The notes under the pieces were generated by a model that saw nothing but the letters and a program-made list of their open reading frames with translations, was not told where the DNA came from and ran no database searches. A stretch of DNA of 64,000 nucleotides from Dendrobates tinctorius (taxonomy: Eukaryota), in NCBI RefSeq assembly GCF_039654945.1, contig NW_027361891.1, positions 6,324,001 to 6,388,000 on the forward strand, given 5' to 3'. The position numbers and the translations under genes were made by a program. Positions 10,370 to 64,000 of this stretch are shown here, piece after piece (positions within the stretch are counted from its first letter, which is position 1; every line of letters begins with the position of its first letter).

Positions 10370-12044
10370 TGGTCTCTGGAATCTCTCCAGTGGGTGCTGT
10401 CGTGGCGAAGAGTAAAAAGCCGGATTACTTACCGGTAATGCTCTTTTAATGAGTCCACGACAGCACCCGTTCACTTCCCCCCCCCCCCTAAGGATATCAA
10501 TAGTTAAAGTATATTAACCAAATAATGGATAAGAAAGATGTTAAAATAAGAGAACATTGCCTAATCCTTGGCGGTCCTTCTGGTACTCAAACGAAAAACT
10601 GAGGAGGAAAGGTGGACCGCCCCTTTTATCTTTCCTGTAGGGTTTCCTGTTCCAAATGGGCGGATCCGATACTGTCGTGGACTCATTAAAAGAGCATTAC
10701 CGGTAAGTAATCCGGCTTTTTTTTACCTGAGTAATTTATCCGTGGTAAATTTGGTGGTGGTTATGCATTTTTGAAGTACTAAAACCTAACCTTAGGGTAT
10801 GGGAGGTATAATTTTGGACTAAATTGTCTGATAATTATCTTTATTTGTAAACAGGTTGCCGATCACCCAATAACTAGCAAACACTTGTTCATTAGGTGTG
10901 ACGATCTTTTGCAATGCTCAAAAAATCATCTGTCATAAGGATTACCCACAACTCTCCTGTCACCCCCCCCCCCCCCAGTCCCCCAAACACACACAATGTT
11001 CATGCCTTCTGTTTGACTACTTTTTTTTGCCTTAAATCACACAGCCCAGAGGCTGACCTCCAAACCTAAGGGGCTGCTTGGCAGGGAATAGAGCTGGAGT
11101 GACAGAGGCTTTAGATCTACAAACGGCTGTTCACCCTCATTTGCATATTAACATTGCTGATTTCTCAGTACCATAATAATGGACTTGTCATGTAAAGGTA
11201 TTGTCGGATTTATCTTTGAAAGAGCTACAATGTTTTTAAAAAGTATTTATACCATGTGGCGAACTGGAGAACTTTTCCACATTATTTCATGCTACACCCA
11301 CAAACTTTAATGTGTTGTTTTTTTTGGGGGGGGTGGTATTCCAACACCTATTAGCTAATATTTATGAAATGTAAAGGAAATGATAGATGGTTCTAGAAAT
11401 ATTTTGAAAGTGTAAATATGAAAATTGTGACGTGCATATGTATTCAGCCCCCTCTTTCCCACACACACACACACACTGAGTAAATACTTTTTAGAAGTCC
11501 TTTCTCTTCAATTACTGCTGCAGCTCTTTTGGGGTATGTCTCTGCCAGTTTTGCTCATGTAGAGGATGACGTTGTCGCCCATTCTTTGCAAACTAGCTCT
11601 ATCTCAGTGAAATTGGACGATGAGCATCTGAACAGCAGTTATCAAGTCTTGCCACAGATTGTCATTGGGATTTAGGTCTGGAATGTGACTGGGCCATTGA
11701 AACACATGAATATGCTTTGATCTAAACCCTTTCGTTGTACAGCTCGGGCAGTATTTTTAGGATTATTGTCCTGCTGGAAGGTAAATTTACACCCAAGTCT
11801 CCAGACTTTGACAGCCTCTAACAGGTTTTCCTCCATGATTGCCATGTATTTCGCGTTATCCATCTTCTCATCAACTCTGACCAACTTCCCTGGCCCTGCT
11901 GAAGAAAAGCCTCCCCACAGCATGATTCTGCCATCACCATGTTTTACTCTGGGGTTGGTGTTTTCAGGCTGATGTTTTCTGCCAAACATAGTGTTTACAT
12001 TGCGTTTGCGGTTTTCTTCCACATGCTAGCTTTGTCCCCTACAT

Positions 12045-15061: not shown

Positions 15062-16660
15062 ATTGGAGGCAATAAGCACACGATGAATGAACATCTGCAC
15101 ATTAGCAGCCATGGACAGATCCAGGTTCAGCAGCTGTTTGAAGACAATAGCAACAAAAGAACGGTCCTGACAACACAACCCAACGGGCTCACAGCTGTTA
15201 GTAAAACTGGATTGCCTGTTTCCGATAGACAACTCGAAAGCACACACCGTAGACAAGGAAGTTCTAGCTCTTTGAAATCCTCAGATGGGACAACCAAAGT
15301 AAAGTCCTCTTCATTAACCCCAGAACAAGCAATGAAGCAATACATGCAAAAACTGACCGCTTTTGAGCACCATGAAATTTTCAACTATCCTGAAATTTAT
15401 TTTTTGGGTCCAAATGCAAAGAAGCGTCAAGGTGTGATTGGTGGTTCAAATAATGGTGGTTACGATGATGTCCAGGGTTCGTATGTGCAAGTGCCACATG
15501 ATCATGTCGCTTACCGCTACGAGGTTCTTAAGGTAATTGGCAAAGGAAGCTTTGGGCAAGTTGTGAAGGCTTATGATCACAAACTCCATCAGCACGTGGC
15601 CTTAAAAATGGTAAGGAATGAGAAACGTTTCCATCGTCAAGCCGCAGAAGAAATACGGATCTTGGAGCATCTAAAGAAGCAGGATAAAGACAACAACATG
15701 AACGTCATCCACATGTTGGAGAACTTTACATTCCGCAATCATATCTGCATGACATTCGAGCTGCTGAGCATGAATCTCTATGAGCTCATAAAGAAAAACA
15801 AATTTCAAGGCTTCAGCCTGCCTTTAGTCCGCAAGTTTGCGCACTCCATCTTACAGTGCTTGGATGCTTTGCACAAAAATCGAATAATCCACTGTGACCT
15901 TAAACCGGAAAATATTTTATTGAAACAACAGGGTAGAAGTGGCATCAAAGTGATCGATTTTGGCTCCAGCTGTTATGAGCATCAGCGTGTGTACACATAC
16001 ATACAGTCCCGCTTTTATCGAGCTCCAGAGGTAATACTTGGCGGTCGCTATGGCATGCCTATTGACATGTGGAGCTTGGGCTGCATTCTAGCAGAATTGT
16101 TGACTGGTTATCCACTTTTACCTGGTGAAGATGAAGGAGATCAGTTGGCATGTATGATTGAATTACTGGGGATGCCATCTCAAAAATTGCTTGATTCTTC
16201 AAAACGAGGCAAGAATTTTGTCAGCTCCAAAGGTTACCCTCGTTATTGCACTGTCACAACTCTGCCAGATGGGTCTGTGGTTCTTAACGGCAGCCGTTCT
16301 CGAAGAGGAAAACTACGAGGCCCTCCTGGGAGTAGGGACTGGGTAACTGCTTTGAAAGGCTGTGATGATCCCTTGTTTCTTGATTTTCTAGCACAGTGTT
16401 TAGAATGGGATCCTGCTTTGCGCATGACGCCCAGCCAGGCGTTACGACACCATTGGCTACGTAGACGCTTGCCAAAGCCTCCAACTGGAGAAAAGGCCTC
16501 TTCCAAAAGAATAACTGAAAGCTCTGGTGCTATAACATCCATTTCTAAGTTACCTCCCACATCAGGCTCAGCTGCAAAACTAAGAACTAATTTGGCCCAA
16601 ATGACCGATGCCAATGGAAATATTCAGCAGAGGACTGTGTTGCCAAAGCTTGTTAGCTGA
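15062..16660 (+). CDS. DYRK2: DYRK2 terminal coding exon: dual-specificity tyrosine-phosphorylation-regulated kinase 2 (NAPA, DH box, kinase domain)
   Basis: TTTCAG acceptor, then [13 protein letters not shown]. Motifs [36 protein letters not shown]. The C-terminus [18 protein letters not shown] matches DYRK2. Confidence 0.97.
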
Positions 16661-37808: not shown

Positions 37809-40800
37809 ATGGCGGATGAACAGCGACTGCTGCAGCACATCCGGCAGCTGCAGGGCAGGTTGGCGGCTCTCGAGCGTTCAGCCTCAGCTGCGGATGTTAC
37901 TGCAGTCGCTGTTCAGGCAGCCACAGAGGCTGTTTCCCGTGTGACCACTGCCATCCCTGCCCCGACTTTGTCCCACCTCCCGCTGCCCGAAAAGTTCTCG
38001 GGTGATAGTGCAGCTTGTAGGGGTTTCGTAACCAGTGCTCTATACAGCTGGAGCTGCTGGCTGCCCGATTCCCCTCCGAGCGGGCTAAGGTGGGATTTAT
38101 TATTTCCCTTCTGTCGGGCAGGGCTTTGGAGTGGGCCACACCGCTGTGGGAGCGTGGTGATCATGTGGTGCAGGGTGCTTTGCGGTTCTTAGACACTCTG
38201 AAACAGGTCTTCCTGGGACCACGAGTCACCCATGACACCGCGCTCCGGCTGCTGGCACTGTCACAGGGCTCGTCCATGGTCAGTCACTTCGCCATCCAGT
38301 TCCGGACGCTGGCCTCAGAATTAGAGTGGCCAGATAAGGTCCTCATTCCAGCGTTCTGGAGAGGTTTGGCTGGCCATGTGAGGGACGCTCTGGCCACCAG
38401 AGAGATTCCCGCTACACTGGAGGAGCTTATCTCTGTCTCCACCCGAATCGATCTTCGCTTCATCGAGCGAAGGTTGGAGCGGGACCAGTGTAGGCAGAGG
38501 TTTAGGTTGGCATCTTGTTTTTCTAGACCTCTGGAATCCCCCGATCGGGCGTCCGAGCGTCAGGGGGCTTCCCGTGAGGGATCTAGACTCCGGTCCGCTC
38601 GAGCTCCTGTGAGCTGTCATATTTGTAGGCAGGCCAGTCACCTCGCCAACCGGTGCCCACAGCAGCAGGGAGAACGCTCGTGCCTAGTGGCCGTAGGAGG
38701 CGGCGCACTAAAGCCAGCGACGTTTTCCTCCAAGCTGTCCTTTAAGGGGACTCTTGGGTTTAATTCTTCCACTCTGGAGGTGGAGGTTTGCGTGGATTCC
38801 GGGGCGGAGGGCAATTTTATGTCGTCAGCCTTCGCCCAACGGCACGCTATACCTCTGGTTATGATGTCTACACCAGTCACCGTCAGAGTGGTAAACGGCA
38901 CCACTCTACCCTCGCAGATAACTCACCAGACCGTCCCCTTGGTACTCTCTGTGGCTCCGTCTCATCAGGAGACGATATCCCTCCTCGTCATGCCCGAGGG
39001 TATTGACCAGGTACTTCTAGGGGTTCCCTGGCTGCGGTATCACTCCCCCCATATAGAGTGGTCCTCAGGGAGGATTATTGGGTGGAGTAAGTCATGTGAG
39101 GGTAGATGTCTGAGGGAGTGCGTTCAGGTTGCCTCCACCGAGGTTCCCGCTGATCTCTCCTCGCTCCCCAAACACTATCGGCAGTATGCAGACGTGTTCT
39201 CCAAAAAGGCGGCGGAGACCCTTCCACCACATCGCCCCTATGACTGTCCTATTGACCTCTTGCCTGGTGCTGAGCCTCCCCGGGGTCGAGTCTATCCCCT
39301 ATCTCTCCCGGAGACTGAGGTCATGTCTCAGTACATCAGGGAGAATCTGGCAAGAGGATTCATTAGGAAGTCAGTGTCACCAGCGGGGGCGGGATTCTTC
39401 TTCGTCCAGAAGAAGAGTGGGGAACTACGTCCTTGCATTGATTACAGGGGTCTTAACGCCATCACCGTTAAGAATAAATATCCACTGCCCCTGATATCAG
39501 AACTGTTTGATAGGCTACGAGGAGCGAGGGTATTTTCCAAACTTGATCTGCGGGGGCTTACAACCTGATTCGCATCCGTGATGGAGATGAATGGAAGACG
39601 GCATTTAACACCAGGGACGGGCACTATGAATACCTGGTGATGCCCTTTGGGCTCTGTAATGCCCCGGCCGTCTTCCAGGACTTTGTGAACGATATCTTCC
39701 GGGATATGCTTACCACCTCGGTTGTAGTCTATCTGGATGATATCCTCATCTACTCTCCAGATATTGACTCCCACCGGAGAGAAGTTTGCAAAGTTTTTGA
39801 TCGCCTGCGGGCGAACTCCCTCTATGCCAAGTTGGAGAAGTGTGTGTTTGAGCAGGAGTCCTTGCCTTTCCTGGGCTATATCATCTCGGCCCAGGGATTG
39901 GCCATGGATCCTGCCAAGCTACAGGCGGTGATGGATTGGCAGGAACCTCATTCTCTCAAAGCGGTGCAGTGCTTTATGGGGTTCATAAATTATTATCGCC
40001 AATTCATCCCCCACTTCTCGACTTTGGTAGCACCCTTGGTAGCCCTCACCAAGAAGGGTGCAAATCCCAAGTTGTGGTCGGAACTGGTCTCCAAGGCCTT
40101 CTCCACCATTAAGTCCCATTTCGCTAGCGCTCCCATTCTACATCGCCCCGATGTAGACAAGCCCTTCATTCTGGAAGTGGATGCCTCTTCCGTCGGTGCT
40201 GGAGCAGTCCTGTTCCAGAGGGACACGCAAGGTCGGAAGCATCCATGCTTCTTTTTCTCCAAGACCTTCACACCGGTGGAGAGGAATTATGCCATCGGGG
40301 ACAGGGAGTTGCTAGCGATGAAGTTGGCCTTCTCGGAGTGGAGACACCTCCTGGAGGGGGCTCGTCACCCTTTCCAGGTGTTCACCGACCACAAAAACTT
40401 GGTGTATTTACAAACAGCCCAGCGGCTAAACTCTCACCAGGCTAGATGGTCCTTGTTCTTTTCCCGGTTCCATTTCACCCTCCACTTTCTCTCCGGGGAG
40501 AAGAACGTCCAGGCCGATGCTCTCTCCCGCTCCGTGGTGTCATCGGAGGAAGAGGAGGAGGAGCCTCGGCTGATCGTCCCATCCGAAAGCCTGAGGACTG
40601 TGGCTCCGGTTGCCCTTGAGTCTGTGCCTCCGGGCAAGACATTTGTCCCTGCCCGTCTGCGACCGGAGGTCCTCTCTTGGGCTCACTCGTCCAGAGTGGG
40701 TGGACATTTTGGGACAAAACGGACCTCCGACCTTTTGGCGAGGACGTACTGGTGGCCACATATGGCCCGTGACGTCAAGGACTATATTGAGGCATGCGTC

Positions 40801-42306
40801 TCTTGCGCCCGGAATAGGTCCTCTCGGCAGCGGCCCGCTGGGCTTCTTTTCCCTCTGCCGATAGCAGACAGGCCCTGGGAGATGGTCGGTATGGACTTTG
40901 TGGTGGGGCTACCAAAGTCCAGTGGCAGCACGGTCATTTGGGTTGTCACCGACCATTTCTCTAAGATGGTGCACCTGGTACCTCTCTCCCGGTTACCATC
41001 AGCGCAGGGCCTGGCAGTCTTGTTCATCAAGCACGTTTTCCGCCTGCACGGCATGCCGGACAAGATTGTCTGTGACCGAGGTCCTCAGTTTGTGTCCCGG
41101 TTCTGGAGAGAGCTCTGTTCTCTACTCAGCATTGAGCTGAATCTCTCCTCGGCCTATCATCCCGAGACGAATGGGTTGGTAGAGAGAGCCAACCAGACCT
41201 TGATAACATATCTTCGACATTTTGTCTCAGCCAGGCAGGACGACTGGGCATCCTTGCTGCCGTGGGCAGAGTTCGCGTTGAACAATGCTGTGGCCGACTC
41301 TACCGGTCAAACCCCATTCCTCCTAAATTACGGTCAGCATCCACGCGTTCCTGTGCCCATGCCCGTGTCTTCCACCGACTCCAGGGTGGCAGACTGGGCG
41401 GTGGAGGCACGTGACATTTGGGATCGCACCCAGGATGCTATCCGAGCTTCCAAGGAGAGAATGAGGATCTCCGCTGACGCACACCGGCGTCCTGCTACAA
41501 GCTTCTCACCTGGCGACATGGTATGGCTCTCTACCCGAAACATTAAACTGCGGGTTGAGTCGCCCAAGTTCGTGCCACGATACATTGGCCCATTCAAGGT
41601 CCTTGAGCGACTTAGCTCGGTGGTCTACCGCCTGGCTCTTCCCCCACATTTGGCCATCTCGGACGTGTTCCATGTGTCCCTCCTCAAACCAGTTCACATG
41701 GCCCGGTTTTCCGAGCCATCTGCCGGGTCATCAGACTTATCGTCTGACGAGTTTGAGGTTAATGCCATCGTGGGGCGCAAGTTTGTCCGTGGCAAAAAAT
41801 TTTATTTGGTGGACTGGAAGGGTCATGGTCCCGAGGCTCGGACCTGGGAGCCGGTGGAAAACATTCACGCACCGCTCCTGATCGCGGCTTTTGAGCGCAG
41901 TGAGGCTCAGAGGGGGGGTAATGTTAGGCATCGGATTCCTGGCACTGCACAGCGGGAATCCAGAGCCAGACATCCTGTGGTCTCCCATTCCTCTCCGACC
42001 GCTCGGACTCCTGCTCAGCAATCTCGGCTGGCCAGGCATCTCCCTCTGATTCGTTCTGTGAGCCTGGATGTTGCTGCCACCTCTGGGGCAGCAATGGTGA
42101 CGCAACCTGCTTTGCAGGGAACTGCTCCCGAGGCTAAGTCCTCATGCCGTGCTACTAGGCATGCCCACAACTTGTCCTCTCAGTGGAGAGCAGGGGTCAC
42201 ATGTGCAGGTCCTATGTCGGATCTGATTGGTCCTTCCTATAGTACTGGAAGGTCCCGGAAGCGCATGGCTATAAAAAGCCCGTATGCCGGCTCGGCCATG
42301 CGCTAG
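37809..42306 (+). pseudogene. Gypsy gag-pol with two 1-nt frameshifts (~38033, ~39555)
   Basis: PEKFSGD gag, [14 protein letters not shown] knuckle, DSGA protease, YLDD RT, DAS RNase H, HHCC and DDE integrase, GPF motif, chromodomain (EFEVNAIV...YLVDWKG...TWEP). Confidence 0.9.
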
Positions 42307-42815: not shown

Positions 42816-44331
42816 ACAGGCATGTAATCACATAGGGGTATTCAGTTTTAAAACATAATTCACCATTGCCATTTTCCCCTAGGTAGCTGCAGGACATACC
42901 TTAGAGACACTAGTTTGTTTAACTTCAGCTGCTTAGATACAAAAACCAAATGTGGAAATTTCCCTTAATATGGAATAGAGAATGTTACAAATCACATGAC
43001 GAAAACATTGGAGTTGAAGTGCTCCAAATGACACAAATTAATTCTCAGCTAACCTGCATTCTATACCATAGAAATATATATATATATATGCAATTTTTTC
43101 TTTTACTTGCTATTTTTATCTTTTTTTTACTCAATATCTGAACTGGTGCTGTTCCAACGATGTTGGCAGAGAGACTTGTATCCCACTTACACATGAGCCC
43201 TGCAGTCAATCATTGGTTGCAGTGCTCATGTGGCAAAACAATGTCACGCGAACTCCAATAGACCTGGTGGGGGGGGGGATATATATTTTTTCTAACGGGG
43301 GAACTATTTAATTTAAAAAAGTGTTGATCAGGTAGTGGACAACCTTTTTAACCACTTGGCTAAAATGAGCCATCAGATCTTGTGTCAATTGCTTCTCCCA
43401 ATCTAGACCTTTTTCTCTGCTAATTCTACTCCACTGAATGTGTCTCATTTTATCCTCTACTTATGAAGAATGCTTCTGTAAACTGTCAGCGCTGAGCTTC
43501 GTTTCTTTCTCACCATGGATACTGCTTCATGTAAAGATGTAAAGTGGTGTGACAAAAAGGGAAGAATAAATATAGGGTGAGGATCACAACCCTTGTTCTC
43601 CGGTATACTGTAATAATCGTCGGAATCCCATTGGCTCTGTCGCTCTGCCTTACAGGGAATGTGTGAAATGGAGATTGGGAGTTTGGTACACGCAGCATGG
43701 ACTCCTGTCAATTAGGAGAAATGCATCTATATTTAGAAAGCAACACATGGGAAAGAAGCCTGAATGTGGGGAGTGTGCGGCGCTAACGTAGCCACTTATT
43801 GTGTTTTGCCTGCATTCAGCTCTGTCTCCAAGCTGCTGCGCTATTGATTGTCCGCTAGAATGACTCGTGCTTGGATGACACCACTAGTAATCATAGTTAT
43901 GCAACCACATTGTGCCGGATAGCTGGCATAAGAGCTTGTTCTATGTGAGTAACGGCTTTTTCTTTTGCAGTACTGTGCGGACACGCAGGGTCGCACCTAT
44001 AATAAGGACATTTGAGTCTGTGGCTCAGGCGACAGACAGCTACTATGCACAGGGGGCGGCATTATGCGCTCTGCTTCCAGCAGCACCTACAATTTAGCCT
44101 GCACGCTGGTGCTGCTGGTAGTGTGCAAAGGCTTGTAAGTGATGAGGTCACAGGAGGGAAGGAGTCAGGGCCCCCTGATCATGTGACCCCTGACTCCTCC
44201 CCTCCTCTGACCATCACAGGTCCTGTGCGCATCAGCCCTCGGTCTATCGATCATCTCCGTCCCTGCTCTGGTCATAAGGGGACAGGGCTATGGACGCAGT
44301 TGTAGTTTAGCAGTGCATACTTATCATTTAA

Positions 44332-49397: not shown

Positions 49398-52086
49398 TTA
49401 GTACCAATCAGTGTGCCCACAGTACCAGTAGAATAAGAGGGGTAGGAAACTAGGTGGCACTGGTCACATTGAGCCTTTCATACTTTTTACTGGTGTATAA
49501 TCATATGCCCTGAGCACCCCCATAAAGTGGGCCAGCCCCAGACAACAGGGTACAAACAAATCACTATTACTATCAGTCCAAGTGGACAATTATATACATA
49601 AAGTTAATGATGTCCCTGTGCCAAGCAGTGCAGAGGATCAGAATACACTGAGGAGACCAGAGCAGCGGGGTATGGTGAGAAGAATTATATGGGTCCCATT
49701 ATGCTGTGTGAGGTAATATATGGTGCCCATTATACTGTATGCAGTAATATATGGGGCCCATAATACTGTATGGAGCATTATGTGGGGATAGGGGATGACT
49801 TTCTGTTTGTTGTGGATCTGACCGCTGGGACCCCCATGATCCTGGGAAACATAGCTTTGTAGAGCACCATGTAAATGGAGCGGTGGTCAATAATACGTAC
49901 TGTGGTGCCATTCACATGTGGCTCTTCAAGTAACTCCTTTAAGAGAGTGATGAGGGGACGACAAAGTATAGCAAACATTCACTGATTGGGGCTGATGAGT
50001 GTTATAGTTTGTGGGCTGGTGGGATTTGTGTGCCAGGGCTACATTTTTGTCCCAGTGCAGCCCTGTGCCAGGCCTATTATTGCCATTAATGATCCTTGTT
50101 CTGGATACTTCTGTGTTGTTGTATGTGCGAGTGACATCCTTGTGTTTGGACACCTTTCTTTTCTATTTATCTAAATCAAAATGTCCACTATTGTACTCAG
50201 TTTTACAATATAGATATAAAAATTTACTTTGTGTGTGTGTGTGGGGGGGGGGGCGTCATTTTGCTGTTCGTCTCAGGCAGCAGAGAGGCTAGGTTCACCC
50301 CTGCGGACACATATGCTGCCTGACACAGCCTAACATAGCATTCAGGAAGGTTGGATAAATTATGCCAAGTCGCCGATCTCTGGAATAATTGGACCGTAGA
50401 CCATTAATAATACCTGTGGTTTGCATTAATTTCTGTGAGATCTTTGCTGCTTTTTGCATCGACGACTAACTCCTGTAATGTAACAGTCATGCAAAGTAAA
50501 ATCATGATATCAGAGTATATTGGCTACATTACGTTTCTTTCTTCCGTCTTAGGGCTCATTCAGACGTTTAGTGATTTTTTTTCTTGTACGTAAAAGCACG
50601 GATAACTGTTTATCAGTATTTTTTATCCAATATTCATCATTTGGTCTGGGTCAGTGTTTTTCACCTATGGAGAAATAAATTGCAAAACTTCTCCTGACTA
50701 ATAGCGGACAGCGCATGGACTGCACACTGATGCCGAAAGTCTAATGACTGTGATTTTCACCGGCCCGCAGACTTGTATGGGTAATTTTGATCCAATGGTT
50801 CGGAGCGAAGACGGCCATGTTGCCAGATTTTTGCAAGTGATCTGTCGGACAAATCAGACATCCGGAGAAAGTGAGAGAGCAGTGACAGCTTTCAGTTCCT
50901 CCGGATGCCAATTACGTCTGAAAGAGAGGAGAATAAAGCCAGCACTGATTGTCCGCAGGGAATGTCATGCGAGCTTCAGGAGAGCCAGTGCCGACACTGA
51001 TAGAACAGCGCCGACAATGGCGGATTCTTCAGTACATATGCTATTATTTTACTGGGGGAAAACAGGGATTGAGGTGCTGTCTGAGTAGTGGACAACACCT
51101 TTAAAGCTGCTTAATTTTCTTTTAATGCAGCCGTACATATTTTATTCCATGATGGGCATTACTGCTGTTCAATCTGGCCATAACTGTTCAATGACCAAAT
51201 TGATTCCCGACATCAACTAGATAAAAACCTGCAGCAAGGCAGACACAAAAAAAGATGAGTGAACCAGACCAAAGTAAAAACCGTAATATATATACATATA
51301 ATTAAAGTGCAAATGTAGATAAATGCACAACTTAAAGGAAACTTGTCTCCAAAAAAAAATGCTATTAACCTTCAGATATGGGGAGAATCCACACACAGAT
51401 TGATAGCATTTTTTCTGGTGACAAGTTCCCTTTAAGTTGTGCATTTATCTACATTTGCACGTTACTAACCTGCCCAGCGCCTGCACTAAGCCGAACGCTG
51501 TGGGGAGAAAATTAACTTAATTCTCCCTGGCAGCATTCGGTTTCAGTCACAGGGTGGCTCCAGCGCTGGTTCAGTCACCGCTCTGATTATACAGAGCCGC
51601 AGCTGTAACGGATATTGGTTCTGCATTGGTGCCGGACGTCAGGACTGCCACTAGGAATTTCGGGGCCCCATACTGGCAAAATTTTCGGGACCCCTTGAGA
51701 CTCCGCCCAGGCTCCACCCAGCCCCGCCTCCACCCCGTGAACTGTCCTCAGTCCCACCGCTCTCTCTTGGAAAAGCTCCACTTCTCACCTACACACATTA
51801 ACAGTTCCCATCACCAGATCACACATATAGCTGGCAGCTTTTGCTTTGGCCAAAAGATTTTTTTAAGCCGCCACCATAACAGGGTAGACACTCTTGGCCA
51901 GGCCCTACTCTACTGTAGAAATAGATTAGAAACATATGTGACATGCACAAGTGTGAACAAGTTGGTCAGACAATGCTCACACCACCCAATGGCTGAAACA
52001 CAAGAAAACACAAAATGACAAATTTGCAAAAAATACTCTGCAGTAAAAAGCATGACAGTAATCAGCAAGTGCTGTATAACGAATAC

Positions 52087-52167
52087 AGGGTATTTAGTCG
52101 ATACGTTTTTTGCAAAAAATGTATACCAAGCCGCTTCACCATGTCAGGGTAACCCCTCACGAAGCAG
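52087..52167 (-). ncRNA. Candidate HDV-like ribozyme, inverted copy (L3 mutated to CTGACAT)
   Basis: Reverse complement of the motif at 52373. Confidence 0.55.
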
Positions 52168-52372
52168 TCCCTATCTAATGTATTTAAAACCTGAACATGT
52201 GAACAGTGTCTAAATGAACAGGATACAGACAGGCGCCTCCTAGCATATGGGCTTGTGGTGTAAGACAGCTCATTTATGTGCATGTCACACAGGAGAGGGG
52301 TGGGATCTCCCAAACCATGCTGAGCATGCTGAGCATACCCCATGTTCAGGTTTTAAATACATTAGATAGGGA

Positions 52373-52454
52373 CTGCTTCGTGAAGGGTTACCGTGACGTG
52401 GTGAAGCGGCTTGGTATACATTTTTTGAAAAAAAACGTATCGACTAAATACCCT
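52373..52454 (+). ncRNA. Candidate HDV-like ribozyme, copy 1
   Basis: P1 CTGCTTC/GAAGCGG, P2 AGGGT/ACCCT, P3 ACC/GGT, L3 GTGACGT, P4 hairpin, J4/2 CTAA. Confidence 0.65.
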
Positions 52455-52787
52455 GTATTCATTATACAGCACTTGCTGATTACTGTCATGCTTTTTACTG
52501 CAGAGTATTTTTTGCAAATTTGTCTTTTTGTGTTTTCTTGTGTTTCAGTCATTGGGTGGTGTGAGCATTGTCTGACCGACTTGTTCACACTTGTGCATGT
52601 CACATATGTTTCTAATCCGTTTTTTCCTTGCTCAGCATGGTTTGGGAGACCCCACCCCTCTCCTGTGTGACATGCACATAAATGAGCTGTCTTACACCAC
52701 AAGCCCATATGCTAGGAGGCGCCTGTCTGTATCCTGTTCATTTAGACACTGTTCACATGTTCAGGTTTTAAATACATTAGATAGGGA

Positions 52788-52868
52788 CTGCTTCGTGAAG
52801 GGTTACCGTGACGTGGTGAAGCGGCTTGGTATACATTTTTTGCAAAAAACGTATCAACTAAATACCCT
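52788..52868 (+). ncRNA. Candidate HDV-like ribozyme, copy 2
   Basis: Same pairings as copy 1. Confidence 0.65.
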
Positions 52869-53201
52869 GTATTCGTTATACAGCACTTGCTGATTACTGT
52901 CATGCTTTTTACTGCAGAGTATTTTTTGCAAATTTGTCTTTTTGTGTTTTCTTGTGTTTCAGTCATTGGGTGGTGTGAGCATTGTCTGACCGACTTGTTC
53001 ACACTTGTGCATGTCACATATGTTTCTAATCCGTTTTTTCCTTGCTCAGCATGGTTTGGGAGACCCCACCCCTCTCCTGTGTGACATGCACATAAATGAG
53101 CTGTCTTACACCACAAGCCCATATGCTAGGAGGCGCCTGTCTGTATCCTGTTCATTTAGACACTGTTCACATGTTCAGGTTTTAAATACATTAGATAGGG
53201 A

Positions 53202-53282
53202 CTGCTTCGTGAAGGGTTACCGTGACGTGGTGAAGCGGCTTGGTATACATTTTTTGCAAAAAACGTATCAACTAAATACCCT
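53202..53282 (+). ncRNA. Candidate HDV-like ribozyme, copy 3
   Basis: Same pairings as copy 1. Confidence 0.65.
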
Positions 53283-53963
53283 GTATTCGTTATACAGCAC
53301 TTGCTGATTACTGTCATGCTTTTTACTGCAGAGTATTTTTTGCAAATTTGTCATTTTGTGTTTTCTTGTGTTCCTACTCTGCTGTAACCTATTAAATATT
53401 TGTTAAAATCTACAATACAATTTAGGTATATTTTTATTTATTTTTCAATTTTTAAAATGACCAATAATATCACATACAAGGAACAAATACCGCTACACCA
53501 TGTCCAGACCACATATTACCACCACATTGTGACCTATAATACCACATAAAAATTAAATACATCACTGCAGTAATACGATCCCTTAAGTAACCCCTATGGT
53601 AATAATATCCCCCATCCTGACCCCCATTGGTCTCATTCTTGGCTTCAGCCATATGTTCTCCCATCCCACCCTCATGAGTATCCATTCTGCCCCATATGAT
53701 CTCCCCATCCTGCCCCATCTGTCTCCATCGTATCCATCCTGCCCCATGATCCTGTGCAATCTGTCTCCAACCCTGCCCCATGTGTCTCCAGTCATGCCCC
53801 GTATCTCCATTCTGCCCCGTGTCTCCAATGATGCCCCATGTCTCACATTCTGCCCCATGTCTCACATTCTGCCCCCTCCTGTCTTACTGTCACATTCTGC
53901 CTCTTCCTTTGTCTGTGTCACATTCTGCCCCATGTCCTGCATTCTGCCCCAGCGTCCAGCATG

Positions 53964-54003
53964 AGTCCCCTGAGGAAGCCCATGCGAAACATGCATTGGG
54001 GCT
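53964..54003 (+). ncRNA. Minimal type-I hammerhead ribozyme (Penelope-type; stem III CpG-decayed)
   Basis: AGTCCC-CTGAGGA-A-GC-CCAT-GC-GAAA-CATGCATT-GGGGCT with an intact CUGANGA/GAAA core and stem I AGTCCC/GGGGCT. Confidence 0.75.
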
Positions 54004-56532
54004 GCTGTGTGCATGGTATATTTGGACTTATAAGGGTAAGGACTCCCCCTCTTGATAGCGCTATGGCACTTTATTGATGTGGAATGAATTACTATGTTTA
54101 CAGTCAGTTACCTATATTGAATGTATCTGAATTAACTGATTGAGTTCTTCTCTGTATAAGTGGCCATATATATTGGGACACTTTTGTGTAATATTTATCC
54201 ATTTTCTCTTTGGGGTTTGATATACCCAGTCCTAATATTAATTATTTATACCACCCACTTTGTCGCTGTTCGTGTCTTTCGCAATTTGAACAATTTTGGT
54301 CCATAGTATAATTTTTATTATATGTATGATTAATAAAATTGGAATATTTTATGATATTTTAAACAGGCTTTTGTACTCTGTTCTTCGTGATATGCTTTAT
54401 GCTTTTGAGCATTCCTGTTGCCCTTTATAAGGTGGCACTATAATATTTGTTCTTTGGTTGTTTTAAGGGAAAGAGATAGCGTTGCACGTTGTGAAACCTG
54501 ATGTTGATGCTCGAAAGAATACAAATATGCTGTGTACCAGAATCAGTAAAGTTACCAGTTTGAAAGTTGAATTGGACTGCGGCTCATTTTGTAAAAAACC
54601 AGACCGCGAAGACCTCCAGAAACCGACAGAGTACCCTGTCTGCGCTGGGGAAGAAGCCACAGGTATGCAGTACGTGTTTGTGATGGGAGGGCAGGGCGCG
54701 CTAACGCAAATGCTATCCGCCATGACTACCACCCTGTACCTCCCTCACACAGGAGGGTGGCGATCATAAGAAGATGGATTGCATTTTATTGCAATGTAGC
54801 GGCAACCCAAAAAATACGTAATTCTGGGGTTTTTAATTTTTTCCTCGTTACGCAGTTTAGCGATTGGGTTAATTTTTTATATTGATTGGGCGATTTTGAA
54901 CATGGCGATATCAAATTTGTGTATGTTTGATTTTTTTTTTATTGCTCTATTTTGAATGGGGCGAAAGGAGGGTGACTTCAACTTTTATATTTTTTAATTT
55001 TTTTTAATATTTATAAAAACATTTTTTTTTACTTTCGCCATGCTTCAATAGTCTCCATGGAAGACTAGAAGCTTCAATACTTTGATTGCCTATGCTATAC
55101 ACAGGCAATGATCAGATCGCCTGTGTGTAGCAGAAATGCTCATTTGCTGAGTGCCAACCACCAGGCCGCACTCATAACAATCTGGCAATGACAACCATAG
55201 AGGTCTGCTGCAGACCTCTGGTTGTCATACCGACCTATTGGTGACTCGAGATCATGTAACAAGGTCACAGATGGACGAGATTAATGATGTGCTTCCTATA
55301 AGAACGAGTTAAATGCTGAGTTAACTAGTTAACAGCCGCGGGTGGTTCACGATTCCACCCATGGCTGTTGCGGGCACATCTCAGCTGTATAGATCAGCTG
55401 TCATGTCCTTGGAAAGTTGTGGGCTCAGCGCCAGAGCCCGCACCAAACAGGCGGAGTCCGACATGTGCGTCCTACTAGGCCACATGTCACAAAGGGGTTA
55501 ATAACTAAAAAACATGAGTTGTAACTAAACACTCATGCACGAAAAATAGAGACCTACATGTATTAAACATTCAAGCAATATAATAAAATCCAGTGGTCGC
55601 CTACCAAACACCTGTATATGTGGCGCCCCTGACGGTTCAGTCGCCACAGAGGTCCTGCACCACAGCTAGAGGTGTGGTACTCCGCTCTCGGGTAAGAAGG
55701 GGGCACTACCCAGAACCCACACACTTACATCTAACAATGTACCTCTCAGGGCCCGGGAGGAGATAGGTAGAGGGTGTGGGTGGAGAAAGTAGTAGGGGAG
55801 GAGTCAGAGAGAATTGTCATGGAAATAGGAGTCAGTTGGAGGGAAGGAGTTCAGTTGGTGCTGTGGACTGAAGGAGAGAGGAGCACGTCCCTTGACTAGC
55901 ACAGCGTGAGAGAAAGGAGGGGAGAAGGAAGGGGTCCTAGGGGCACGAGAAGTGAAGAATCCACCCGTGGTGCCCGAGTCTGCGCCGACTGTAGTTGGGT
56001 GGAGGGACCGGGCCGCAGTGGGGGACAGGATCCGGGGCTGCTGGCTCGGGACGCTGTGTGTTGGGGTGCGGGGGGGAGAGGAAAGAGCCGGCGCAGTGGG
56101 ACAGCCGAGGAGGGAGCATCTGAAGGGGATTCTGGCACAGTGTGACCCAGGTTACTTGAGAGCTGGCTGGACCACCAACCCGGAGGACGCAGCACCCCGG
56201 CTGGGGAATGTGGCCGGAGAACTGCGAGTAAAAATGTGGAAACTGCACCCCCTTGTGTCCTCAGATTTATTTGCTTCGTCACCTGCCTTGCACCACAGCT
56301 ACCATCATTATCTCTAACACCTATAACTGCGCTGGGGCCTAGCTCTGCCCATGGAGAGCTGTAACAACTCTGCTGCATCACCAACAGCCCCAGCGGTCTC
56401 TTTTGCAGTGTCGGCTATCACCTTCATTGCCGAACACCATGGGTGGCGTCACGAATATATTTCCCCATAAACTACTACCCTCATCTTTTATTTACATTGC
56501 ACGCCCAGGGTCACGGACCGGGTCACTGCTGC

Positions 56533-57084
56533 AATTTATTTTTAACTTTTTTATTTCAGGATATTTGTTTTTTGTTTTTGGTTTTCTCTTTGTAAAGGTC
56601 ATGTGTTCATATGCAATTACATTTTGCATACACATTAATTTACTTTTTCAGCTCAGACCCAGTTTCTCATTTAGTTCAATGTGCATTCAGTGCATATAAG
56701 GGTGTGACCACCCTGTTTCTGATTTGGAAATCCATCTTCTCTGGCCTATACTATTACTAGTGGTCAGTCCCTCTGTCCTTGTTCACATTTACGTCACTTG
56801 ACAAGTGGAAAGGTTTTAAATATAAGAGTTAGGACTGTCCCAAAAGGGTTGCCGTGACGTGGCGGGATGGCTTGTGCATTATTTTGATCAAAATTATGAT
56901 TACTAAATACCCTTATTATTATTTCTACCTTCATGCAATTTTTGCAATTTATTTTTAACTTTTTTATTTCAGGATATTTTTTGTTTGTTTTTGGTTTTCT
57001 CTGTGTAAAGGTCATGTGTTTATATGCATTTACATTTTGCATACACATTAATTTACTTTTTCAGCTCAGACTCAGCTTCTCATT
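56533..57084 (+). mobile_element. Non-coding retroposed element, 1.3 copies of a 413-nt unit, with one HDV-like fold
   Basis: Terminal direct repeat 56531-56672 / 56944-57085 (period 413). Flanking ~57-bp duplication of LTR sequence at 56476-56532 / 57085-57141. Confidence 0.8.
56835..56914 (+). ncRNA. Candidate HDV-like ribozyme, second family
   Basis: P1 CTGTCCC/GGGATGG, P2 AAGGGT/ACCCTT, P3 GCC/GGC, identical L3 GTGACGT, different P4 hairpin, J4/2 CTAA. Confidence 0.65.
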
Positions 57085-58782
57085 TACCCCCATCTTTTAT
57101 TTACATTGCACGCCCAGGGTCATGGAACGGGTCACTGCTGCCGTGACATATTCCCCGAAGGACTGACCGGCCCGGTACCGAGTACTCCCGGCCCTAGGGG
57201 GCAATGCATATACGTCTGACATTGGCCACCAGACATGGTTTGTCTGTACCTGCATGTTATGTTCCATTCACAACCCACAATATAAATAGGTTACTTGCTT
57301 CAATTTGTTTCAGTAAATAACCAAACAGTTGTCTTAGATTTCTGGGGAAGTAAACATATAAAAAACCATCATATGTTATCAGCATGCTCGTTAGTTGTTT
57401 GGGAAGAAAGCCATCTGTTAGCACATTTGGTAGGTAAAAGACGGATGCTGAAGGTGGGAAACATTGTGAATTCTCAACAATAAGTGAATGCTGAAACTTT
57501 GTATGGCACCTGTTTCAAACTGCAGGACACTGATTTAGTCAAAAGGGTAACGAAAGGCTCCCAGACCTCAATGTGAAATGTAATATGGCCTCCATTTTCC
57601 ACGTGCCACTTATTAGGGTCTGTAGACCTGCACTGTATGTTGGCAATATGCCAGGAAACATGCATTATATATACCTCTGGTGAAAGCATCTGAAGAATGC
57701 CACTCGCTCTGCTTACATTTCCTCTATTCATTTTTGTGAGATACTTTTGTATAGAATAGCACTATGCTATCTTATACAGATAGAAAAAAAAGATAGATAT
57801 AGCAATGCATACCTCCCTGATGTGACAAAAAGGACACACTTCTATACCTGAGAGTTGTGAGCTTTTATATGTACATGCTTAATACATACGTATATAGTAT
57901 AATCATCCACCGGACACTTTAGTGATCATTGGTAGTTAACAAATTAATGCGGCATATATGAGGCTGTTGAGTTAGGGTATGTGCCCACGATCAGTAATCG
58001 CTGTGGGTTGGGCGCTGTGTACTTGTGCAGCGTCCAACACACAGCAGCCAGATGTTACAGCATAGTGGATGGGATTTCAAGAAATCCTGTGTCCAAAATG
58101 CGTCCGCAGACGCCTGCGTTTCACCCGCGGAGACGGACATGCGGCGCATCTCTCCAGACTGCAGCATGTCAACTTCTTTTGTAGAGACGCTAGTCTCCGC
58201 AAGAGAAATTTCACCAATAGAATGTAATGGATGTGGTAAATCCACACGGTTCAATGAACATATGCGGATTCACCTGCAGGCAGTAGATGGCAGCGCTTTC
58301 ATGTTCTGGGACAGATCTTACCGGAGTGCACTATTTGATACTATTGTACTTTCTATGCTTAGTTGTTAAGCATATAAGTGATGTCTGACTATTTTTCTAT
58401 TAATGATATGTGACCCTGGTATATTTGTTTGTCTTTGCATTTTGTCACTTTACCTTGTTACCTTTTTATACTAATGATACTCTAATAAAATTCAAATTTA
58501 CTTTTACTATATTTATCTGATACTCCTCATTCTCCTATTGCAGTGTAGACTATCAGCCTGGTGAAGGGCCGCAGGCATGTCCCGTAACAATAAATGGGAT
58601 ACTGTTGTACTGTTGTCAGGACTAGAGTTGAGCGAAACGGGTCGAAAAAATTCAAAAGTCGCCGACTTTTGGCAAAGTCGGGTTTCATGAAACGAAACCC
58701 GACCCTAGGATGAGGTCGGCCACGAGGTCGGCGACTTACGCGCCAAAGTTGCGTTTCAAAAGTTTGTTTTGCGCTCTTTTTC

Positions 58783-58904: not shown

Positions 58905-59010
58905 GGGCGTGCACGCCGACCGCCATGTTACTCATGCTGATCTCAGAATAGGGAGAGCTGCTGCTGCTGATGATTTTGTAGGGAGAGCGTTAGGTAGGGA
59001 AGAAGACACC

Positions 59011-59437
59011 AAAAACTGCTTCTGCTGCTAGCGATTTTGCCTGTACAACACACCAGTCACTGTGCAGTGCAAGGGGAGGCTATATAGTGGTGTATCAGTG
59101 GTGTTGGTTGTTGGGCTGCCTTCTAAGGCTTCCTGACATTCCTGCATTGCTGTTTACCCACTGCTCTGCAAACTGCTTTTTTAAAAGCAATCACAATTTT
59201 TTTTTTTGTCCTGCTGAGAAGAAGAAAAAAAAACTGCTTTTGCTGCTAGCGATTTTGCCTGTACAACACACCAGTCACTGTGCAGTGCAAGGGGAGGCTA
59301 TATAGTGGTGTATCAGTGGTGTTGGTTGTTGGCTGCCTTCTAAGGCTTCCTGACATTCCTGCATTGCTGTTTACCCACTGCTCCGCAAACTGCTTTTTTA
59401 AAAGCAATCACAATTTTTTTTTTTTGTCCTGCTGAGG
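59011..59437. repeat. Tandem duplication of ~220 bp inside the hAT element
   Basis: 59011-59217 is repeated at 59231-59437. Confidence 0.9.
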
Positions 59438-59658
59438 TACTGAGCGTGCATTTTTTCACACCATACAGCGGTGTACGCTCCTCACACAGTACCGTGTAAC
59501 GGCTATTATCACAGCCACAGTGAAGCTATCAGTGAGTCACTCTGTGAGAATAAGTCGAGGACATGTTCCGTTCTTACAGACCTGCACTCTAGGGAGATTC
59601 CAATTCTGCCCAATTCTACATACACCTTGTAGTTTGTGATACACTAGCCAATTTCTGC

Positions 59659-61895
59659 CTGTGACATAGCGCTCAGATATTCAGTGGGCCTCACACAATC
59701 CATAAGTGTCCAGTGTCCACAAGTGCGTGCAGAAATTCAAAATCTCCCTTATCCTCTAGTCACTTTGGTCACAGCTCTGCCATCGAGCCTGTGACAGAGC
59801 GCTCAGATACTAGTCAGTGGGCCTCACACAATCCATAAGTGTCCACAAGTGTGTGCAGAAATTCAAAATCTCCCTTATCCTCTAGTCACTTTGGTCACAG
59901 CTCTGCCATCGAGCCTGTGACAGAGCGCTCAGATACTAGTCAGTGGGCCTCACACAATCCATAAGTGTCCACAAGTGTGTGCAGAAATTCAAAATCTCCC
60001 TTATCCTCTAGTCACTTTGGTCACAGCTCTGCCATCGAGCCTGTGACAGAGCGCTCCGATACTAGTCAGTGGGCCTCACACAATCCATAAGTGTCCACAA
60101 GTGTGTGCAGAAATTCAAAATCTCCCTTATCCTCTAGTCACTTTGGTCACAGCTCTGCCATCGAGCCTGTGACAGAGCGCTCAGATACTAGTCAGTGGGC
60201 CTCACACAATCCATAAGTGTCCACAAGTGTGTGCAGAAATTCAAAATCTCCCTTATCCTCTAGTCACTTTGGTCACAGCTCTGCCATCGAGCCTGTGACA
60301 GAGCGCTCAGATACTAGTCAGTGGGCCTCACACAATCCATAAGTGTCCACAAGTGTGTGCAGAAATTCAAAATCTCCCTTATCCTCTAGTCACTTTGGTC
60401 ACAGCTCTGCCATCGAGCCTGTGACAGAGCGCTCCGATACTAGTCAGTGGGCCTCACACAATCCATAAGTGTCCACAAGTGTGTGCAGAAATTCAAAATC
60501 TCCCTTATCCTCTAGTCACTTTGGTCACAGCTCTGCCATCGAGCCTGTGACAGAGCGCTCAGATACTAGTCAGTGGGCCTCACACAATCCATAAGTGTCC
60601 ACAAGTGTGTGCAGAAATTCAAAATCTCCCTTATCCTCTAGTCACTTTGGTCACAGCTCTGCCATCGAGCCTGTGACAGAGCGCTCAGATACTAGTCAGT
60701 GGGCCTCACACAATCCATAAGTGTCCACAAGTGTGTGCAGAAATTCAAAATCTCCCTTATCCTCTAGTCACTTTGGTCACAGCTCTGCCATCGAGCCTGT
60801 GACAGAGCGCTCAGATACTAGTCAGTGGGCCTCACACAATCCATAAGTGTCCACAAGTGTGTGCAGAAATTCAAAATCTCCCTTATCCTCTAGTCACTTT
60901 GGTCACAGCTCTGCCATCGAGCCTGTGACAGAGCGCTCAGATACTAGTCAGTGGGCCTCACACAATCCATAAGTGTCCACAAGTGTGTGCAGAAATTCAA
61001 AATCTCCCTTATCCTCTAGTCACTTTGGTCACAGCTCTGCCATCGAGCCTGTGACAGAGCGCTCAGATACTAGTCAGTGGGCCTCACACAATCCATAAGT
61101 GTCCACAAGTGTGTGCAGAAATTCAAAATCTCCCTTATCCTCTAGTCACTTTGGTCACAGCTCTGCCATCGAGCCTGTGACAGAGCGCTCAGATACTAGT
61201 CAGTGGGCCTCACACAATCCATAAGTGTCCACAAGTGTGTGCAGAAATTCAAAATCTCCCTTATCCTCTAGTCACTTTGGTCACAGCTCTGCCATCGAGC
61301 CTGTGACAGAGCGCTCAGATACTAGTCAGTGGGCCTCACACAATCCATAAGTGTCCACAAGTGTGTGCAGAAATTCAAAATCTCCCTTATCCTCTAGTCA
61401 CTTTGGTCACAGCTCTGCCATCGAGCCTGTGACAGAGCGCTCAGATACTAGTCAGTGGGCCTCACACAATCCATAAGTGTCCACAAGTGTGTGCAGAAAT
61501 TCAAAATCTCCCTTATCCTCTAGTCACTTTGGTCACAGCTCTGCCATCGAGCCTGTGACAGAGCGCTCAGATACTAGTCAGTGGGCCTCACACAATCCAT
61601 AAGTGTCCACAAGTGTGTGCAGAAATTCAAAATCTCCCTTATCCTCTAGTCACTTTGGTCACAGCTCTGCCATCGAGCCTGTGACGGAGCGCTCAGATAA
61701 TAGTCAGTGGGCCTCACACAATCCATAAGTGTCCACAATTGTGTGCAGAAATTCAAAATCTCCCTTATCCTCTAGTCACTTTGGTCACAGCTCTGCCATC
61801 GAGCCTGTGACAGAGCGCTCAGATACTCAGTGGGCCTCACACAGTCCAAAAGTGTCCAGTGTCCACAAGTGTCTGCAGAAATTCAAAATCTCCCC
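59659..61895. repeat. 126-bp tandem array, ~17.7 near-identical copies
   Basis: GCCTCACACAATCC occurs at 59821, 59947 ... 61081 (exactly 10 x 126). Confidence 0.97.
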
Positions 61896-61969
61896 TGTCC
61901 TATAGACACCTTGTACCTTGTTTTACATTACTATATAGTTTGTTGGATTTGTCTACATTTCTACCAAAA

Positions 61970-64000
61970 ATGAGGAAGGCTGGTGGAAGAGGCCGTGGAA
62001 TTGGGCGGGGGTTGGCAGCTGGTAATGATGGTGTTGGTGGTGGATCTGATGGTAGTGGCAAGAGCAAAATAGGACCGAATGCAGGAGGTGTTGAGCCTGC
62101 GTCATCGTCTGGCTACATAAGGCCTCGAACGCTTAGTTTTCTAGGAGTTGGCAAACCGCTTTTAAAGCCAGAGCATCAGGAAAAAGTTTTGTCTTACATT
62201 GCTGACTCAGCCTCCAGCTCTATCACCTCCTCTTCTTCAGTTGTAAAAAGTAAAAGCACTGAGTCGTCATTGGAGGCTCATGTTCATGAACCACACCTTT
62301 CCTTGTGTCCTTCACCCCAACCAAGATTGAAGGATGACGCAGGCCATACTACTGATTACTCCATGGAGCTGTTTTCACATACCATGCCTGGATTATCAAG
62401 TGAAATGGTGAATTACCGAGGCCAAGATGAATCTGACATGGAGTGCACTGATGCACAGCCGCTGATGGATGATTCTGCTGGTACATTCACTCAGAGCACT
62501 ACATTGTCCTCGCAGTGTACAGAGCCAGATTCTGACCCTGATGAGACTCAGGTGCCCCTTCCCGCACACTATACCACCATACACGGTGACACAGAGGAAG
62601 GTGCACATGACATAGAAGAGGAGGTGATGGATGACCCAGTTGTTGTCCCAGATTGGCATCCATTGGGGGATGAGGGTGCTGCTTCCAATAGCTCAGATGA
62701 GGAGCATCCACAGCAGACATCGACATCGCAACAGCTGTTATCTGGCAGGCCCGGAGCACTCCAAAGACAGGTTCCAAACATCAAAAGAGTTGCTGGACAG
62801 CTTGTCCAGAGGGTCAAAAGATCACAGCGTGCTAGGCCGCAAAATGTCTGCCAAAGTAGGAAGAGTGCAGTGTGGCACTTTTTTGAACAAAATCCTCATG
62901 ATCAGGCCAAGGTTATCTGTAAGAAGTGCGCAAAGACCTTTAGCCGAGGGAAAAATCTGAAAAATTTGAATACCAGTTGCATGCTTAGACATTTAACCAG
63001 CATGCACTTGCAAGCGTGGACACAACACCAAACCTCAAGTGCCACATGTGCAACTGATCACAACGAAGGTAGTCAGCAACGCTACATTGTTTCCCCCACT
63101 GTAAGCCCACCGGTTAGCACAGCAGCAAATGTTGAGGTGTCGGTGCAATGCCACAGCAGTCAGGGAATCCCACTGTTATATCAATGAAAGACTGATTCTA
63201 GGCCATCAGAAAGAACAACAACTCCATCACCATCATCAACCCTCTCTCAGTCCGCCCTGTCCACCGCTACTTCCACCATATGCAGCTCTCAAGTCCAGCT
63301 CACCCTCCCAGACACTATGAGTAGGTCAAGAAAGTACTCAGTCTCTCATCCGCGTACACTGGGTTTGAACGCCCACATTGCCAAACTAATCTCGTTTGAG
63401 ATGATGCCCTTTCGGTTGGTGGAAAGCGCAGCTTTCCGCGAACTCATGGCCTATGCAGTACCACGCTATGACCTACCCAGTCGCCACTTCTCTCGCAAAG
63501 CCATCCCAGCCCTCCACCATCATGTGAAAGACCGCATTGTCCATGCACTCAAGCAGTCAGTGAGCAGAAAGGTGCACCTCACAACTGATGCATGGTCCAG
63601 TCGGCATGGACAGGGCCGTTACGTGTCCATCACTGCGCACTGGGTTAATGTGGTGGATGCAGGGTCCACAGGGGACAGCGGTGGTGGGACAGTGCTGCAA
63701 AGCCCACGGTATAGGAAACAGTTGGCTGTAGGAGTTCGACACTCCTCCTCCTCCTCCAGAAGCGAAAGCTCGTCCACAGAGCGCAGTCGTACGAGCACTC
63801 CATCTGCAGCTGCCACTGTTGCACACGATGTGTCCCCCTATCGAGCAGCTAGTGGAAAGCGTCAGCAGGCTGTGTTGCAGATGATGTGTTTGGGCGACAG
63901 ACACACCGCCGAGGTACTGGCCGAGTACTTGAAGCGACAAACTGAGTCATGGCTGGGCAGTGTACATCTTGAGGCAGGCAAGGTAGTTAGTGATAACGGC
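61970..64000 (+). pseudogene. hAT transposase with BED zinc finger and a single in-frame TGA at 63185-63187
   Basis: SAVWHFF...CKKC...MLRHLTSMH BED finger. The same frame continues after the TGA through PFRLVES, LTTDAWSS, SITAHW and VVSDNG to the window end. Confidence 0.88.

Follow-up and report, generated by a model that had tools for sequence, protein, structure and literature searches.

Two related non-coding insertions, A (51918-53372) and B (56533-57086), lie in a stretch of 64,000 nucleotides of the genome of the amphibian Dendrobates tinctorius (contig NW_027361891.1 of assembly GCF_039654945.1, forward strand, positions 6,324,001 to 6,388,000; this whole stretch is hereafter the window, and all coordinates are counted within it). 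They are made of tandem units of 414 nt (A) and 413 nt (B), they are flanked by target-site duplications (TSDs), and they carry on their sense strand a block of about 82 nt that is conserved as an RNA structure. This structure, borne by a non-autonomous retroelement of Penelope style, is real and statistically strong. As to its role, we lean towards understanding A and B as two diverged families of one non-coding, non-autonomous retroelement of about 414 nt, inserted by the target-primed reverse transcription of a Penelope-like element (PLE), in which each unit would hold a fold of the self-cleaving type, akin to the ribozyme of hepatitis delta virus (HDV) in its variant with a C just after the cleavage site (C1), and would use it as a retrozyme does.

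A sense-strand structure shared by two repeat families

To judge from their alignment, the units of A and B are homologous over their whole length, with one far better conserved block. Permuted to a common start, the two monomers reach a global alignment score of 222.5, against 94.5 +/- 12 for shuffled sequences, and BLAST recovers a block of about 115 nt at 73% identity (E=6.5e-9). Identity is 39-49% over most of the unit, 63% in its first 82 nt, where the differences are concentrated in stems, and 72% in its last 29 nt. An earlier, sequence-only reading of this DNA had described two independent insertions of nearly equal monomer length and patchy similarity; the lengths stand, and the homology spans the unit. 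Both units appear to be non-coding: their stop-free frames reach 150 codons, and a search of 5.8 billion proteins with one of 127 codons brought up no relative. An origin from a tRNA or a short interspersed element was rejected, as the units contain no tRNA-like gene. Their GC content is 42% (A) and 35% (B), and neither nhmmer nor BLAST found further copies of the A plus B profile in the window.

The conserved block follows, on the + strand, the order of a nested double pseudoknot: P1 (7 bp), P2, P3 (3 bp), a 7-nt loop L3, P1', P1.1, P4, the joining segment J4/2 with CUAA, and P2'; the sequence-only reading had proposed a motif of about 80 nt in this HDV strand order, common to A and B, and every helix that it listed was found at its place. 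Three copies belong to A, at 52373-52454 (proposed cut 52372/52373, proposed catalytic C 52444), 52788-52868 (proposed catalytic C 52858) and 53202-53282 (proposed catalytic C 53272), and one to B, at 56835-56914 (proposed cut 56834/56835, proposed catalytic C 56903), all on the + strand. To count the pairs, the sequences were aligned from their common GGACUG onwards and the pseudoknots were written out. Each of the 23 proposed pairs is standard in all four distinct sequences. Between A and B, seven of them show compensatory double changes (three in P1, one in P3, three in P4) and one further pair passes from G-C to G·U, which bears out the claim that P1, P3 and P4 co-vary between the families. 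The observed pairing and covariation was reached by none of 500 column shuffles, and sliding the 3' partners by 1-3 columns left at most one double-change pair, with about 50% pairing. The two families differ at 15 of the 36 nested stem positions; when 15 substitutions are placed at random, all 18 nested pairs are kept in one of 2,000,000 trials (about 5e-7).

The unpaired core behaves quite differently from the stems, since its 19 positions (GGA before P1, the base between P2 and P3, L3, CU after P1' and ACUAAAU before P2') show no difference between A and B; the 10 bases of P2 and P1.1 show none either. The invariance of the single-stranded parts, as it had been claimed, holds for the three direct copies of A and for B, where GGA, the L3 sequence GTGACGT, CTT and CTAAAT-ACCC are constant, and fails in the inverted copy of A (about 52086-52167, - strand), a decayed version of the block with two changes in L3, one of them at the equivalent of G25. 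The G·U pairs of the stems (U2·G, plus G3·U in B) are possible on the + strand only, and the fold is therefore specific to that strand. The presumed RNA intermediate would have the same polarity, its orientation being given by the inverted copy at the 5' side. In both families the nested part of the fold comes to within 2 kcal/mol of the nested minimum free energy, and the P2 duplex is computed to contribute about -7 kcal/mol; the z-scores of the nested minimum are unremarkable, as one would expect of a pseudoknot, and uninformative.

Conservation extends upstream of the proposed cut. Just 5' of it, from -24 to -1, a block at 52763-52787 (+), with counterparts at 52348-52372, 53177-53201 and 56811-56834 (all +), falls in the well-conserved last 29 nt of the monomer, and its TATA-like TTTAAATA (-21 to -14) is invariant between A and B, as is CCGTGACGTGG. 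A released unit RNA would have this block as its 3' tail; the block may act as a promoter of the kind found in the pseudo-long terminal repeats (pLTRs) of PLEs, as an element recognized by the reverse transcriptase (RT), or as both. The run of six U in P4 argues against transcription by Pol III.

Insertion anatomy and a probable Penelope-like machinery

Insertion A (51918-53372) consists of two arms placed head to head between TSDs of 14 bp (51904-51917 and 53373-53386, read from the sequence, with one mismatch), which bears out the earlier claim that family A is a non-coding insertion of tandem 414-nt units with a flanking target duplication. The direct arm (52341-53372, +) is built of 2.49 units, each of 414 nt and 99% alike; Tandem Repeats Finder gives for it a period of 414 nt, 2.5 copies and 99% matches. 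The inverted arm (51919-52326, -) comprises 408 nt, that is, one monomer minus about 6 nt; it is 98% complementary to 52629-53036 without gaps, and has its own 3' end on the outer side, at the left junction. Fourteen nucleotides of filler, delimited by the sequence and the limits of the arms, occupy the junction between the two (52327-52340); the first nine repeat the preceding nine, which resembles a template switch. The inverted arm is thus nearly one full unit in length (408 of 414 nt), and this would fit a single round of cDNA synthesis on a circular template; with three arms, coincidence is possible.

Insertion B (56533-57086, +) is a partial tandem only, of 1.34 units of 413 nt, without an inverted copy. 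Its TSDs are 55 bp long (56478-56532 and 57087-57141, both read from the sequence) and differ by three mismatches. The target duplication that had been claimed for B is therefore present; the end given for the insertion, 57084, was wrong and has to be moved to 57086, because the right TSD begins at 57087. The two TSD copies are 94.5% identical and the two B copies 95% (BLAST, over 141 nt), a similar divergence that is expected if the duplication arose at insertion. At 55 bp the duplication far exceeds both the 14 bp of insertion A and the TSDs of published Penelope insertions, which implies that the nicks were widely staggered or that the intermediate was resolved in another way.

The hallmarks of PLE insertions are partial tandems forming pLTRs, often an inverted, 5'-truncated copy at the 5' end, and TSDs, together with an optional tail of 30-40 bp and a TATA box in the pLTR (PMC8557442, PMC3846280). 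The pLTRs alone suffice to mobilize an unrelated sequence in trans (PMC3846280), and a purified PLE enzyme initiates reverse transcription on both strands of the target, from two fixed positions inside its RNA (PMC11167929). Insertion A has the whole set of structural traits: a partial tandem, an adjacent inverted and 5'-truncated copy at the 5' side, and a TSD. A further likeness to PLE pLTRs is the TATA-like box within the repeat, and cDNA ends at fixed internal sites may be another (PMC8557442, PMC3846280, PMC11167929). The 3' end of the inverted arm of A (after ...CUAAUCCGUUU) and that of B (after ...CUCAUUUA) correspond to one nucleotide when the two families are aligned, with the consensus ...GUUUCU[A/C]AU..UU before the junction; the direct arm of A ends 79 nt upstream of this point, so that two of the three ends in all coincide. 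By analogy, the shared junction site fits the internal, site-specific initiation of PLE reverse transcription, and the anatomy as a whole points specifically to PLE machinery. The sequence-only reading had seen a non-autonomous retroelement retroposed in trans: the TSD-flanked, tandem, retroposed monomers agree with this, and the machinery would, more narrowly, be a Penelope-like one. Compared with published pLTRs, A and B have no hammerhead, and their two presumed start sites lie 79 nt apart rather than 30-40.

The lack of a hammerhead sets them apart from the retrozymes too. Within 51918-53372 and 56533-57086 there is neither a match to a hammerhead model nor a CUGANGA...GAAA core, so that the earlier description of retrozyme-like tandem monomers applies to TSD-flanked, retroposed units in which an HDV-type structured motif takes the hammerhead's place. 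Animal retrozymes, those of frogs included, carry hammerheads and derive from PLE pLTRs (PMC7229834; preprint 10.64898/2026.07.22.740005). With these metazoan non-LTR retrozymes (Cervera and de la Pena, 2020, PMC7229834; Li, Clavereau and Pollet, 2026, 10.64898/2026.07.22.740005), A and B share non-coding monomers of a few hundred nucleotides arranged as dimers to multimers, a low content of GC, TSDs of more than 4 bp, presence in amphibians, a proposed dependence on Penelope-like elements, and one ribozyme (putative in A and B) per unit, so that a multimeric transcript would be cut to units. They differ in that the type I hammerhead is replaced by a motif of HDV topology, in a monomer length (413-414 nt) at the long end of the range, and in predicted circles that are only weakly structured and not strongly rod-like (z = -2.6 for A and -0.7 for B). 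HDV-like ribozymes have been published at the 5' ends of R2, RTE and L1Tc-type elements; full-text literature searches found no tandem retrozyme-like or Penelope-type element with such a ribozyme.

A string reminiscent of a hammerhead core does occur outside the insertions, at 53960-54010 (+), just after the 19-58-bp tandem repeats at 53682-53962: CUGAGGA...GAAA, where a helix I of 6 bp could form (AGUCCC/GGGGCU) and the palindrome AUGCAU stands at the place of helix III. It has a poor helix II and no match to the Rfam hammerhead models at E<=10, and may be a decayed fragment of a Penelope or retrozyme, or due to chance.

Likeness to delta-type ribozymes and the alternatives

Many dimensions of the fold are those of an HDV-like ribozyme. 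P1 has exactly 7 bp in both families, kept through three double changes and one single change; P3 has 3 bp, with two invariant inner C-G pairs and one double change, and no nucleotide separates P3' from P1'. L3 is 7 nt long (G-U-G-A-C-G-U), ends in ACGU, and holds the equivalent of G25, which is invariant in the live copies and lost, together with L3 position 1, in the more diverged inverted copy, as would be expected of a dead copy. P1.1 would join the G at position 3 of L3 to the C after P1', with a U·U at the next position. J4/2 begins with CUAA, an invariant C-U-A-A-A-U precedes P2', and P2, with 5-6 bp, would stack beside P3. An alternative register of P1, starting at the second G of GGA so as to have a G·U at the cut, was rejected as not HDV-like, since P1 would then have 9 bp and include an A×C mismatch.

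At the cleavage site, the closest likeness of the fold is to the C1 variant known from L1Tc/ingi elements; in L3, P1.1 and J4/2 it is closest to CPEB3 and antigenomic HDV. Antigenomic HDV likewise has CUAA in J4/2, and a P3 of ACC/GGU as in family A. CPEB3, HDV and the present motif agree in the size of P1 (6-7 bp), P3 (3 bp) and L3 (7 nt). The nuclear magnetic resonance study of CPEB3 describes U20, C22 (in P1.1), A23, G25 and U26, and a P1.1 in which a G-C pair is joined by a U-U pair (PMC4836649); U21, A23, G25 and U26 are shared with the motif, and so is the composition of P1.1. The ribozyme of an Ackermannviridae phage likewise has one Watson-Crick pair plus U·U in P1.1, where the U·U does not prevent fast cleavage, and the change G25A impairs a nematode ribozyme (PMC13635239). 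Differences from CPEB3 and HDV are a pair C1-G instead of G1·U at the cleavage site, G instead of U at L3 position 1, a flipped P1.1 pair at position 22 (G in L3, C after P1'), extra nucleotides at both ends of P4, and the lack of a match to RF00094 or RF00622-type models.

It is the L1Tc/ingi group (Pr77/L1TcRz; NARTc, SIDER; PMC3185411, PMC4035085, PMC3383444) that provides a precedent for the unusual cleavage site. As far as published descriptions go, its sequences appearing only in figures, it combines an HDV-like fold in both autonomous and non-autonomous retroposons with a C at +1, G-C pairs turned round at the base of P1, a single-pair P1.1, an overlap with a promoter, and a proposed role in separating copies transcribed from tandems. 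C1 stands at the cleavage site mapped by primer extension in the active L1Tc/NARTc and SIDER ribozymes, whose P1 shows the G-C pairs in flipped orientation and whose P1.1 consists of one pair (PMC4035085, PMC3185411), and the authors considered the usual search descriptor too restrictive (PMC4035085). Since the deviation at C1 has this proven precedent, we read the motif as an HDV-like fold of the neglected C1 kind. The likeness has its limits: the host is an unrelated protist, a trypanosomatid, the element is a long interspersed nuclear element with a poly-A tail, and its ribozyme occupies the extreme 5' end of insertions, whereas those of A and B begin and end elsewhere.

The atypical HDV-like ribozyme fold of the sequence-only reading can be retained for its topology and dimensions on the sense strand, and we now gather what weighs against it and against the retroelement built around it. 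The canonical G1·U37 wobble at the cleavage site, which has been called essential, with G1 invariant, in HDV-like ribozymes (PMC8495972), is absent, and in its place come C1-G and then a U·G at +2. The equivalent of U20 is G, so that the canonical U20·G25 reverse wobble cannot form as such. J4/2, with 5-6 nt, exceeds the canonical 4 by 1-2 nt, and four extra nucleotides stand between P1.1 and P4. Rfam models (HDV, CPEB3, drz families, hammerhead and other relevant ones) gave no match at E<=10 in 6 kb and in two 131-nt pieces; those of the HDV family are narrow and cannot score pseudoknots. Covariation amounts to one phylogenetic contrast between two lineages and does not involve P2 and P1.1, whose invariance makes the pseudoknots compatible with the data without support from covariation; and chance alone gives a loose HDV descriptor about 1.5 matches in 64 kb, counting both strands. 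On the side of the insertions, the window has no PLE open reading frame (ORF), whether RT or GIY-YIG; the TSD of B has 55 bp against the 8-10 bp of published PLE insertions (PMC3846280); and none of the three arms ends at the proposed cleavage site, which is what internal initiation on a multimeric or circular template would give.

The main rival is a structured RNA that does not cut itself, a pseudoknotted handle by which the telomerase-related RT of a PLE, or some other protein, recognizes its template in trans, the likeness to HDV being partly convergent. We take this account seriously while thinking it rather unlikely. Co-varying stems with invariant loops are equally expected of an RNA that binds a protein, and a non-autonomous element must carry some feature recognized by the RT, pLTRs alone being sufficient in trans (PMC3846280); the missing G1·U37 and U20, the silence of Rfam and the insertion ends away from the proposed cut go in the same direction. 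What such a handle leaves to coincidence is the number of HDV-specific details found together, namely a 7-bp P1, a 3-bp P3 with inner C-G pairs, a 7-nt L3 ending in ACGU, an empty P3'/P1' junction, a C and then UAA directly preceding P2', and a P1.1 pair in its proper register. Furthermore, the presumed start sites of reverse transcription are 170-250 nt downstream of the block, whereas binding motif and start site are close in the one PLE where this was studied (PMC11167929).

Two other accounts do without a functional RNA fold or make it incidental. The block might be mainly a promoter or enhancer acting at the DNA level, with a TATA-like TTTAAATA and a CRE/ACGT-type TGACGTGG core; we presume that TTTAAATA, TGACGTGG and CCGTGACGTGG can be read as transcription-factor sites, and the first and the last of these are, as said, invariant between the families. 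A TATA box is indeed present in PLE pLTRs (PMC3846280), and the first 77 nt of L1Tc are promoter and ribozyme together (PMC3383444). Promoter function cannot, however, account for seven compensatory pair changes, for a pairing of 100%, or for G·U pairs that are strand-specific; at most it would coexist with an RNA function in a dual element, and we hold it, as a full account, to be quite improbable. Finally, one could see nothing here except ordinary tandem or segmental duplications, or a satellite, with complementarity due to chance, and neither a mobile element nor a functional RNA. Only two lineages are available, and the loose descriptor does yield chance matches: those at 10770-10887 and 43122-43243 (+), rejected as candidates, have many G·U pairs in P1, lack a P4 hairpin, and do not go beyond the rate expected by chance. 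Against this stand two separate, TSD-flanked insertions of homologous units in different host sequence, a conservation that is strongly uneven along the monomer, and covariation statistics that speak against chance, so that the idea is scarcely credible. An HDV-like, self-cleaving-type ribozyme in a PLE-mobilized unit is the account that we carry forward.

Surroundings, proposed mechanism and meaning

The window is eukaryotic and chordate-like, and contains other repeats and retroelements. ORFs of a Ty3/Gypsy-type LTR retrotransposon (gag, aspartic protease, RT, RNase H, integrase and chromodomain) occupy 38090-42303 (+), and overlapping ORFs with a LAP2alpha-like domain, RT and RNase H, at 6338-10366 (+), make up another retroelement, of an unclassified type. 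An uninterrupted ORF of 525 codons at 15083-16657 (+) encodes a dual-specificity (CLK/DYRK-like) protein kinase, and may be an intronless gene or a retrocopy. A tandem array of 126 bp (59657-61913; 17.8 copies, 98% identity) and a 218-bp dimer (58999-59436) lie just upstream of a BED-zinc-finger ORF (61859-63184), and a GC-rich 59-bp satellite at 309-1925 (about 21 copies, 94%) yields spurious long ORFs in three frames.

Outside this DNA, words of the A dimer occur in DNA sequencing runs of one organism. They also occur in small runs that may be RNA, although none is on record as such; these come from several studies of two organisms, and each contains about 14-16% of the sampled A-dimer words, which could represent a conserved, expressed sub-part such as the putative ribozyme block. 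A pattern scan of viral contigs for the motif gave no match; a single pattern match in a GC-rich, 214-kb contig of a marine-sediment metagenome has no P1 or P4 context and was put down to chance.

The life cycle of the element might be pictured as follows. Read-through by Pol II, or transcription of pLTR type from the TATA-like box, would produce a multimeric RNA from the tandem. In it each ribozyme would cut 5' of its own P1, between GGA and CUG, releasing unit-length RNAs with an intact ribozyme at their start and the conserved ...AGGUUUUAAAUA...GGGA>p tail at their end. An RT supplied in trans by a PLE would then copy a multimeric or circular template into cDNA, starting at fixed sites within it and from both nicked strands of the target, and this mode of initiation would generate the partial tandems, the inverted copy and the TSDs. 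A more ambitious step would be to regard these elements as the first retrozymes whose ribozyme is of HDV type and not a hammerhead, a vertebrate family mobilized by Penelope whose tandem transcripts cut themselves into RNAs of about 414 nt that circularize. We offer this stronger form tentatively, and think it doubtful rather than probable.

Were it true, several consequences would follow. The retrozymes and Penelope pLTRs described so far all use hammerheads, and an HDV-type ribozyme in that niche would show that the ribozyme is an interchangeable module, just as in the viral circles of delta-like kind. The Penelope lineages reported without hammerheads, it would suggest, may use an HDV-type ribozyme instead. 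Vertebrates would have a second family of HDV-like ribozymes besides CPEB3, this one in multiple copies, and the C1 variant of the cleavage site would extend beyond the trypanosomatid retroposons, the only group where it is proven so far. There is a warning in this for censuses of ribozymes based on descriptors and on Rfam, which miss such variants. Amphibians would possess a genome-encoded source of circular RNAs with delta-type ribozymes, and the family would become a candidate for the genomic source from which small circular RNAs have obtained ribozymes of this type, a question that bears on the origin of the ribozymes of deltavirus-like agents.

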